Positions 62,005-63,784 of a DNA stretch of 64,000 bases are shown here, piece by piece. Below the pieces are notes generated by a model that made no database searches, was not told the origin of the DNA, and worked only from the letters and a program-made list of their open reading frames with translations. Position numbers and translations under genes: made by a program. The stretch is from Bugula neritina. Lineage: Eukaryota; Animalia; Bryozoa. The DNA is taken from contig OZ037767.1 in NCBI GenBank assembly GCA_964035545.1, forward strand, positions 18,692,259 through 18,756,258, given 5' to 3'. Every line of letters starts with the position of its first letter. Within the stretch, counting starts at the first letter, position 1.

Positions 62005-63784
62005 TTATTCATTGGTCTGGTTAAGTAAAGGAGATACTGCAGTTTCTTCATCACTACCATCATCATCATGGCTTTCATCTACACACATAAGCAACATACT
62101 CTGCATTAAAATTAAATATGTTTTTGAATAAGTATTTCGAAATGCCTAGAATTTTATGAAAGTACATAAATTATTTCTATTTTTATCCAAAAATATTGAC
62201 TTTAACAAAAAGATAACCAAATAGCAAAATCTAAAAGAAAACACGCAACTAGAAAAACTCCTATCGTGTAATTTCGTAGAATTTTAAATATTATTAACAA
62301 ATATTTTTTTATTTTTTATGCACTAAATATAAATTAAAATTTTACTATGTCAATTACTGAGACACACACAAAGTTAACCCATAAAGGTAATCTTTGTATT
62401 GAGAAGCCATGCCTGATGGAAAACGTGGGATTTACTATTTTTTCAACTTATTTTAGCCAATAACAAAAATTAAAAAAAATCCACAGTTGTGGTTTCTCGA
62501 AAACTTTTTCCAACATTATATGAGAACACATAACATAATATACTTGACTAGGACTGAGCAATGTAACATTGCATAACATAATTTCTCAATATATTTGCTA
62601 TGCTAAGAAAAAATCAAAAGCTCTTAACAAAAATTGAAGAAAAGCATTTAAATTTTTTGATTATATCAAAATCCCTCTATGTGCTAACCAATTGCTCAAT
62701 CTAAAATGTAATAAATAAATAAATAAAATAAAATAAATAAATATTATGATTAAGTAGAGTAACTGAAAATTAAACCTCTTAATTTTTGACTTTTGTATGA
62801 ATATACATTATTAACTTTAGTAAGGCTTTTCCAATCTTATACTGGAAAAGCTGTAAATGTTCAACATTGGCTACATACCACCCTCTGTTGAAGGAGGCAC
62901 AGCAGTTGTGTCATTAACTGTGCTAATTGCTGAAAGGGATTCAGGTACTGGAGTCGATGAACTTTCGGCCTGAGTCATTGGACTTTGATTGGCATTGTTA
63001 ACTTCAAGCAAACATGATGGCATTTCACTGGATGTATTTTGATAACATAAAGGAGTTTTCTCATCTTCTGAACTTTCACTAACACAGAGATCAACTTCAT
63101 TACTTGTTCTAGATCTATTACCAGGTAGTATATTTCTAAATCTCCCAGACCCAGAAATCACATCAAGTTGCAGATCACCAGATAAACTGTTTGAAGGTGG
63201 AGGACTTGGTTTTTGTGCCTGGTCTGAATCTTGTGATTGAGTCGGATCTGGTGTCTGGGCTGGATCTGGTGTTTGGGCTGGGTCTGATGTCTGGGCTGAA
63301 TCTGATGTCTGGGCTGGATCTGATGTCTGGGCTGGGTCTGATGTCTGGGCTGGATCTGGTGTCTGGGCTTGATCTGGTGTCTGGGCTAGAACTGATGTCT
63401 GGGCTGGATCTGATGTCTTGGCTGGATCTGGTGTCTGAGCTGGATCTGGTGTCTGGACTGGATCTGGTGTCTGGGCTGGATCTGGTGTCTGGACTGGATC
63501 TGGTGTCTGGGCTGGATCTGATGTCTGGGCTGGATCTGATGTCTTGGCTGGATCTGGTGTCTGAGCTAGATCTGATGTCTGGGCTGGATCTGATGTCTGG
63601 GCTGGATCTGGTGTCTGAGCTGGATCTGATGTCTGGGCTGGATATGATGTCTGGGCTGGATTTGATGTCTGAGCTGGATCTGATGTCTGGGCTGGATCTG
63701 ATGTCTGGGCTGAAACTGATGTCTGGGCTGAAACTGATGTCTGGGCTGAAACTGATGTCTGAGCTGGATCTAGTGTCTGGACCT
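62005..63784 (-). CDS. Grindelwald-like TNF receptor copy 3, last two exons (5' part beyond window end)
   Basis: Exon 63784-62879 (homologous to 52105-51542; open in the frame VQTLDPAQTS...[12 protein letters not shown]...PVPES...PPSTEG) and exon 62078-62005 (DESHDDDGSDEETAVSPLLNQTNE*). The copy-2-equivalent stop lies at 61950-61948. Confidence 0.75.
63240..63779 (-). repeat. Coding 18-bp minisatellite, about 30 units (CAG ACA TCA/CCA GAT CCA GCC = QT[S/P]DPA)
   Basis: Directly visible; 540 nt without indels. Confidence 0.95.

Follow-up and report, generated by a model that had tools for sequence, protein, structure and literature searches.

A recently expanded coding minisatellite in the putative cytoplasmic tail of a TNFR-like protein of Bugula neritina, possibly a disordered spacer of variable length

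The window, that is, the whole stretch of 64,000 nucleotides of the Bugula neritina genome that was analysed (contig OZ037767.1, below C3, positions 18692259-18756258), contains copies 1, 2 and 3 of a gene for a putative receptor, and in copy 3 the last coding exon carries a long in-frame minisatellite. The explanation that we favour, with our confidence evenly divided for and against it, is that this array is a variable-length disordered spacer, a recently expanded coding minisatellite in the tail of a TNFR-like receptor. According to this explanation, the minisatellite would have expanded and homogenised recently within the membrane-proximal part of the cytoplasmic tail. The encoded chain of about 180 residues, rich in P, A, Q, T, S and D, would be intrinsically disordered and would tether to the membrane the conserved distal tail, which carries the candidate TRAF2/3-type site of the family, STPVPES; a change in repeat number would then change the length of the tether. 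In this picture the receptor itself is fast-evolving, TNFR-like by its predicted fold and probably TRAF-coupled. The function as a spacer is a prediction, and the array could have no function.

The gene of copy 3 lies on the minus strand and is composed of five exons, encoding the signal peptide, ectodomain, stalk, transmembrane (TM) segment and tail, which are all intact together with their splice signals. Its 5' exons are located beyond the right edge of the window, in the flank L005, whose position 1 is window position 63742. The following features were assigned to copy 3:

62871..63784, minus strand: terminal coding exon, with (E)VQTLD, the array, a unique tail of 124 aa and the stop codon TAG at 62871-62873
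63228..63767, minus strand: coding array of 30 in-frame hexads, an 18-bp minisatellite with consensus P-A-Q-T-S/P-D
62937..62957, minus strand: S-T-P-V-P-E-S, a candidate TRAF2/3-type docking site distal to the array, with PVPES at 62937-62951
L005:1304-1498, minus strand: ectodomain exon
L005:659-823, minus strand: TM exon, a hydrophobic stretch of about 25 residues and then RKLKRRSASRGSNRN

The signal-peptide exon (MN-T-RY--VLVV-WS...) is conserved in the three copies, and the short stalk exon of copy 3 bears the eighth cysteine. The tail exon has its acceptor AG at 63785-63786, in phase 1, and the junction runs from AAT G with donor gtaaat to acceptor ttag followed by AG GTC CAG, which gives E-V-Q. 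This phase-1 E-V-Q junction is common to copies 1, 2 and 3, the donor of copy 2 being AGT G followed by gtaatt. Regarding topology, the ectodomain has the sequons NCS and NET and the hydrophobic run of the TM exon is followed by the basic RKLKRR. Judging by the sequons and the positive-inside charge, the array would be cytoplasmic and would begin some 20 residues past the membrane; a cytoplasmic position had been claimed in an earlier reading of the sequence alone (hereafter the sequence-only reading), and the hydrophobic and basic segments upstream of the array support that claim under the predicted topology. The protein is thus predicted to be a five-exon type I membrane protein with a signal peptide, an ectodomain of eight cysteines, a stalk, a TM segment and a tail.

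Only the minus-strand frame from 63809 is open from the array through the 124 unique codons down to the TAG; in the tail exon it runs for 303 codons without interruption, and copy 2 has its stop at the corresponding position. The two alternative minus-strand frames of this exon were ruled out, having stops within the array or shortly past it, and the ORFs with ATG or TTG starts that span the array (63175-63819, minus strand; 63191-63796, plus strand) are other frames. About 30 tandem PAQT[S/P]D units had been proposed in a frame outside the ORF list, and this is what was found, with a splice phase that agrees. Tandem Repeats Finder identified an array of period 18 that spans 63244-63780 and comprises 29.8 copies; it is free of indels, its match rate is 90% and its score 808, and the unit on the plus strand is GGATCTGATGTCTGGGCT. 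The units of 18 bp fall within the 10-100 bp range and are arranged head to tail and in frame, as in a coding minisatellite; because of this unit length, gain or loss of a unit leaves the frame intact. A pattern of 25 nt covering a double unit, with up to two mismatches, was searched in the genome (216 Mb), and all of its 25 matches are within the array, while the reversed control had 0. The array is therefore not a dispersed element, and an origin from a dispersed repeat or transposon was ruled out, the pattern being confined to the array genome-wide. A scan of metagenomes with the repeat pattern, in a collection from which records close to this genome may be missing, found no match. In an AF2 model of the tail alone, a single-sequence run and as such weak evidence, the mean pLDDT was 45 and the array had no secondary structure.

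The features assigned to the other two copies are the following:

51534..52105, minus strand: last coding exon of copy 2, sharing the acceptor phase of copy 3
51870..52103, minus strand: degenerate array of copy 2, 13 hexads, of which only PGQLPD and PAQTPD match PxQxxD
51600..51614, minus strand: P-V-P-E-T in the tail of copy 2
53616..53786, minus strand: exon of copy 2 for the end of the stalk, the TM segment and the juxtamembrane region, with a hydrophobic stretch and then basic residues
54254..54445, minus strand: cysteine-rich ectodomain exon of copy 2 (in-frame part)
17295..17491, minus strand: last exon of copy 1, in which P-V-P-E-S lies at 17361-17375
19858..20049, minus strand: cysteine-rich ectodomain exon of copy 1

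The penultimate exon of copy 1, beginning at 18190 with (E)VQSQK, lacks an array. The description of copy 2 as having a shorter, degenerate array and of copy 1 as having none was accurate. The last array units, PTQSQD in copy 3 and LVQSQD in copy 2, match VQSQK of copy 1 in position, so the array arose from a local Q-centred element. The unique tails of copies 2 and 3 are 62% identical, with a dS of 0.22 and a dN/dS of 1.07.

Using a profile of 21 sequences, 17 ectodomain exons of the family were identified in the genome, nine of them within C3 18.60-18.83 Mb. Among 1.84 billion cluster representatives, a profile built from the ectodomain exons of the three copies retrieved only 15 proteins at E ≤ 1e-3. 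Four of these are full-length proteins of Watersipora subatra, with 215-227 aa and labelled 'uncharacterized protein', and the remaining ones are exon-sized ORFs of metagenomic or raw assemblies. Judging by these matches, this is a putative receptor family without annotation, known so far only in bryozoans. All searches and folds used single exons or natural database proteins. Pfam analysis of nine exon translations and 21 family ectodomains yielded no TNFR, BCMA, TACI or BaffR model and no family, and sequence and profile searches of PDB chains with the receptor had no match. PF00020 (TNFR_c6) is absent at the receptor locus, its matches in the genome being on C5 and C7, and an exon-wise search of the genome for the TNF ligand model PF00229 found nothing at E ≤ 0.01; the ORFs of the nearby loci L018-L020 did not confirm any Eiger-like ligand either. 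The ESM Atlas feature search with the ectodomain exon provided nothing usable. For the unique tail of copy 3, the word-index protein search returned no annotated protein, and the metagenome scan with the tail protein, to which the same possible gap in the records applies, no match.

The assignment to the TNF receptors relies on predicted structure. Single CRDs of the Grindelwald, BCMA and TACI type are defined by a beta-hairpin and, after it, a disulfide-nested helix-loop-helix module. A complete natural ectodomain of the family (P0005:20-100) was modelled with AF2 on an alignment of 21 sequences, with a pLDDT of 90 and a pTM of 0.75. A Foldseek search with this model against the PDB alone gave nothing significant, with TACI-CRD2 at rank 45. 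The all-against-representatives search placed Drosophila Grindelwald (Grnd; 6zsy_A) at rank 2 of 48,161 chains, with Z 2.7, rmsd 3.4 Å, 42/48 residues and 26% identity, and its top 15 include BCMA twice and TACI once. When the Foldseek list was re-examined, five single-CRD TNFR chains were in the lead (Grnd 6zt0, BCMA 8hxr, Grnd 6zsy, TACI 1xu1 and BCMA 6j7w); Grnd 6zt0 has Z 3.0 over 42/51 residues with 26% identity, BCMA 8hxr has Z 2.9 over 41/41 residues and TACI 1xu1 has Z 2.6 over 38/39 residues. In the ESM Atlas shape search, the first match is a molluscan cluster with TACI-CRD2 and BCMA Pfam matches and the second is a BCMA cluster, with a TM-score of 0.54 (by target) and an rmsd of 2.6 Å. 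The Grnd, BCMA and TACI matches have a Z of only 2.2-3.0 and a TM-score of 0.39-0.54, over 38-42 residues of chains of 39-51 residues. Domains of around 40 residues cannot reach high Z values. Three structure searches agree on the class, and we call the protein TNFR-like by its predicted fold; the low Z is no proof alone, and the protein is a putative member of the superfamily. The identity as a TNF receptor given in the sequence-only reading is accordingly sustained by the predicted fold, with Grindelwald, BCMA and TACI at the top (Z 2.6-3.0), and finds no counterpart in Pfam TNFR_c6 or in any of the sequence searches.

Among the known systems, Grindelwald (PDB 6ZSY, 6ZT0; PMC8024323) is the best structural match in the PDB, and it is likewise a small type I protein with one ectodomain of eight cysteines, a TM segment and a tail with a short motif, which in Grnd binds TRAF. 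The helix-loop-helix module predicted here has nearly the cysteine spacing of that of Grnd: the family has C-x3-C-x12-C-x3-C, one residue off the C2 module of Grnd, C-x3-C-x11-C-x3-C (PMC8024323). In contrast, there is no detectable sequence homology between them, Grnd has no repeat array, and the N-terminal half of the bryozoan domain differs by an extra strand and helices, by the placement of its cysteines and by a last cysteine encoded in the next exon. BCMA and TACI are similar in that the structural matches extend over whole CRDs (Z 2.2-2.9) and in that BCMA/TACI clusters come first in the ESM Atlas; together with BAFF-R they differ in that their Pfam models have no match here and in that the present family is expanded to 17 genes and known only from bryozoans.

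The motifs of TRAF1/2/3/5 are Px(Q/E)E, Px(Q/E)xxD and Px(Q/E)xT (PMC6125299). The genome has 29 MATH exon matches to PF21355. A gene on C1 is TRAF6-like (E 1e-35 to human TRAF6), and at least five genes on C9 (5.07-5.43 Mb) are TRAF3-like; in the comparison, run on one of the C9 genes, human TRAF3 is the best match, followed by TRAF5 and TRAF2. These C9 genes keep the strand FxPDxxSSSFxRP...MNIASGCP and the strand YTSRxGYKMC, and at least three genes on C8 keep the SSSF...MNIASGCP strand, their other strand being YTETYGYKMC. There are at least eight TRAF3-like MATH genes with an intact serine triad, besides the TRAF6-like and divergent ones. From the presence of these genes it follows that the adaptor class predicted to read Px(Q/E)-type motifs exists in this genome, where it is expanded.

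Distal to the array, the unique tail of copy 3 contains the STPVPES site, which was not described in the sequence-only reading. Six-frame translations of around 100 kb around the 17 family members were scanned for P[VTIA][QP]E[ST]. Five matches were identified, all five on the gene strand, inside tail ORFs and in five paralogues: PVPES in copy 3, PVPET in copy 2, PVPES in copy 1, and PTQES and PVQES in the paralogues L018 and L020, 90-115 kb upstream. The context S-T-P-V-(P/Q)-E-S is common to copy 3 and L020, and within the scanned loci of the family the pattern [ST]-x-P-[VT]-[QP]-E-[ST] is restricted to the tails of the five paralogues, including copy 3. By chance, approximately 0.01 matches of the tail motif are expected per 1,000 tail residues or so. 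An alignment of the PxQES of the paralogues to the array boundary, obtained with MAFFT, was judged unreliable, the shared S-T-P-V-x-E-S context fitting the distal PVPES. PVQES and PTQES are of the major Px(Q/E)E type, and PVQES is nearly identical to the CD40 motif PVQET (PMC6125299). PVPES of copy 3 is atypical and resembles BAFF-R, in which PVPAT is the crystallographically defined TRAF3 site (PMC2989778); the PVPES or PVPET of the three copies and the PVQES or PTQES of the two paralogues are all candidate sites. The tails of Watersipora have YP[TV]QA[IV]GD, in two paralogues, and DVPES. As the five matches represent at most two independent evolutionary occurrences, the case for the distal motif as a TRAF site is suggestive and not conclusive. 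TRAF docking at STPVPES would be consistent with these comparisons, and a TRAF coupling of the receptor family is plausible.

The sequence-only reading had also proposed that the array is a multivalent TRAF-docking platform, in which each unit binds a TRAF2/3-like MATH domain and the repeat number sets avidity, signal strength or the capacity of a sponge. We regard this as a tentative possibility, on the unlikely side. In the codon-by-codon parse, P is found at its position in 23 of the 30 hexads, A in 27, Q in 28, T in 29 and D in 24, and position 5 is S in 18 and P in 11. PxQxxD is matched by 17 units, which agree textually with the minor TRAF1/2/3/5 motif Px(Q/E)xxD, as had been claimed, and the unit P-A-Q-T-S-D is in this respect a fair copy of the sites of EBV LMP1 CTAR1 (PQQATD) and TANK (PIQCTD), with which it has P(-2), Q(0) and D(+3) in common. 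The unit has Ser at +2 where these sites have Thr. The LMP1/TANK-type PxQx[ST]D is matched by eight units, PxQx[ST] by 12 and PxQxT by none of the 30. The P-x-Q core is present in 21 units, and mostly also in the units of the relative. The TRAF3-like genes that keep the serine triad and the R/Y strand, the canonical motif in the two upstream paralogues, the Watersipora YP[TV]QA[IV]GD and the growth of the array from a Q-centred element (PTQSQD, similar to VQSQK of copy 1) also favour a platform. On the other hand, 13 units are broken at P-2, P0 or P+3, and the Pro found in 11 units occupies P+2. LMP1 and TANK have single constrained sites, whereas here there are 30 neutral-looking copies in tandem. 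The 33-bp repeat region of LMP1 itself is not known to be its TRAF site. Judging by the size of the MATH domain, the spacing of six residues would bar full occupancy. Besides, when a hexad of P, A, Q, T, S and D is arranged in circular order, six of the 120 orders give PxQxxD (around 5%), and approximately 13% give either minor TRAF motif; with such chance levels, the match alone is weak evidence.

Within the array, 30 nonsynonymous and 10 synonymous variant occurrences were counted (12 and four by type), an N:S of 3.0 compared with a neutral expectation of 2.86 from the consensus unit, although a young array that is still homogenising has low power to detect selection and could mask it. By the method of Nei and Gojobori, the dN/dS of the ectodomain exon is 0.14-0.29 among the copies (0.14-0.21 for copy 3 against copies 1 and 2) and that of the unique tail is 1.07-1.09; of the 19 codons of the unique tail of copy 3 that differ from the relative X2, 18 have changed nonsynonymously and one synonymously. 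X2 and X3, other samples of the same study with less than 90% identity, have the same unit, several copies of which show A>T and D>G. At the 5' edge of the array they have units other than those of this genome, and their short-read contigs collapse the array. A relative diverged by about 11% has G for D in several units, and a relative diverged by about 13% retains the locus; the contigs of a relative end before the tail exon. The TRAF motif residues of the array are consequently not conserved among homologues, with only two of 13 motifs kept in the homologous array of copy 2, D replaced by G in the relative and neutral variation within the array, whereas the residues of the distal motif, P[VT][QP]E[ST], are conserved across the five paralogues. 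These comparisons give no sign of selection maintaining the repeated motif. Of the multivalent interpretation, the frame and the motif match therefore stood, and the upkeep of the motif by selection did not (N:S 3.0 against 2.86; 2/13 in copy 2). The disordered spacer, mentioned in the same reading as a fallback, is better supported than the TRAF scaffold by the neutral array and by the tail with a dN/dS near 1. Weak contacts of single PAQT[S/P]D units with TRAFs may come on top of such a spacer, and no datum requires them.

A bolder form of the platform, which we consider unlikely, is a germline-tunable avidity module: a Q-centred TRAF-docking element would have been amplified 17- to 30-fold in the juxtamembrane tail of a Grindelwald/BCMA-like receptor of bryozoans, a single chain could engage several TRAF3-like protomers, and alleles of different repeat number would either determine the gain of signalling or serve as a sponge for TRAFs. 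A linear-motif or modification role without TRAFs, such as proline-directed phosphorylation at T-P/S-P, binding of another partner or multivalency of the phase-separation type, seems quite improbable. An array rich in P, Q, S, T and D and predicted to be disordered would suit it, as would the T-P present in 11 units, but the neutral pattern of variation applies to it equally, and these features are not conserved in copy 2. Finally, it is very improbable that the model of copy 3 or of its tail exon departs from what is expressed, through decay of a duplicate or removal of the array by splicing, and that the array thereby means nothing for the protein: the stretch is matched in one DNA run only and in no RNA run, the unique tail evolves with a dN/dS near 1, with almost only nonsynonymous changes against the relative, and resembles no annotated protein in the word-index search, but the frame of 303 codons is open with its stop placed as in copy 2, none of the five exons or splice signals is damaged, purifying selection acts on the ectodomain exon and the locus is kept in the relative diverged by about 13%.

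Returning to the variable-length disordered spacer, the array would have this role as a tether in a receptor tail, and a known coding VNTR in the cytoplasmic region of a receptor is the 48-bp repeat of exon 3 of human DRD4, with documented polymorphism. Both are in-frame minisatellites encoding a proline-rich, disordered and motif-bearing cytoplasmic segment; they differ in the class of receptor, in the motif and in that the variable length is documented in DRD4. If the array is only a spacer, it represents a tidy case of a fast-evolving gene of immune type that tolerates a minisatellite in its coding sequence, and nothing beyond that. If the predicted fold holds, bryozoans carry a tandemly expanded family of single-CRD TNFR-like proteins beside expanded TRAF3-like adaptors, which would provide material on the diversification of the TNFR-TRAF system in lophotrochozoans. 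The three copies form a natural series, from copy 1 without units through copy 2 with 13 decayed ones to copy 3 with 30 fresh ones, in which tether length or motif valency may be related to adaptor recruitment.

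The unannotated 8-Cys receptor family to which copies 1, 2 and 3 belong has 17 ectodomain exons in the genome assembly (G000), distributed over four contigs, of which C3 carries the window:

C3:18.60-18.83 Mb; C3:25.09-25.11 Mb; C9:6.62-6.63 Mb; C4; C7: ectodomain exons, 8-Cys receptor family

Two or three of these paralogues are present in the upstream loci L018-L020 (C3:18632243-18662242), together with large ORFs of LINE and LTR retrotransposons. In many family members the tails appear to be short and dissimilar to those of copies 1-3. In copy 3, approximately 4 kb separate the ectodomain exon from the signal-peptide exon upstream of it (intron 1, L005:1568-5525, in the sequence flanking the window); in copies 1 and 2 this distance is around 0.6-0.8 kb. 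The long intron 1 of copy 3 is common to the contig of a relative (L033), which is about 13% diverged.

Regarding repeats and other genes, the following features were identified:

Window 23735-25106, minus strand: ORFs resembling LTR-retrotransposon gag or integrase C-terminal regions
Window 37714-39935: compound (TA)n/(CA)n microsatellite, about 2.2 kb
Window 63966-64000 and L005:225-492: (TA)n-embedded palindrome, intron before the copy 3 tail exon
Window 976-1659, 6294-6602, 11425-11637 and 47217-47447, minus strand: Ly6/uPAR-like fragments
Window 30609-30857 and 31354-31638, plus strand: Ly6/uPAR-like fragments

The LTR-like ORFs are related to a full element in L019, and a 394-aa ORF among them has no match in Pfam. 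In each of the three receptor copies, introns contain comparable long dinucleotide tracts. Any (TA)n sequence is inherently self-complementary, and Rfam at the gathering threshold returned no family for L005:1-1700, which includes the intron holding the palindrome. The Ly6/uPAR-like (three-finger) gene fragments are two-exon and occur in at least five copies in the window; their Pfam matches are weak (QVR, E 9.5e-4; CD59, E 0.046), neither reaching the curated cut-off.

Turning to possible partners, no TNF-like ORF of at least 60 aa was found in L018-L020, and a PF00229 (TNF ligand domain) search of G000 gave no match. TRAF3-like MATH-domain genes form two tandem clusters, both covered by loci L008-L016:

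C9:5.07-5.43 Mb: at least five genes
C8:10.03-10.08 Mb: at least three genes

The SSS strand for peptide binding is kept in genes of both clusters, which represent a lineage-specific adaptor expansion.

Copy 2 (window 51534-54445) was compared with copy 1 (17295-20049) and copy 3 (62871-63784 and L005). The copy 2 ectodomain exon is close to that of copy 1 (dS 0.17) and distant from that of copy 3 (dS 1.47), whereas its tail exon is close to that of copy 3 (dS 0.22). By these distances copy 2 is a mosaic, with a copy 1-like ectodomain exon and a copy 3-like tail exon. The pattern suggests that the tandem paralogues have undergone gene conversion or unequal crossing-over.
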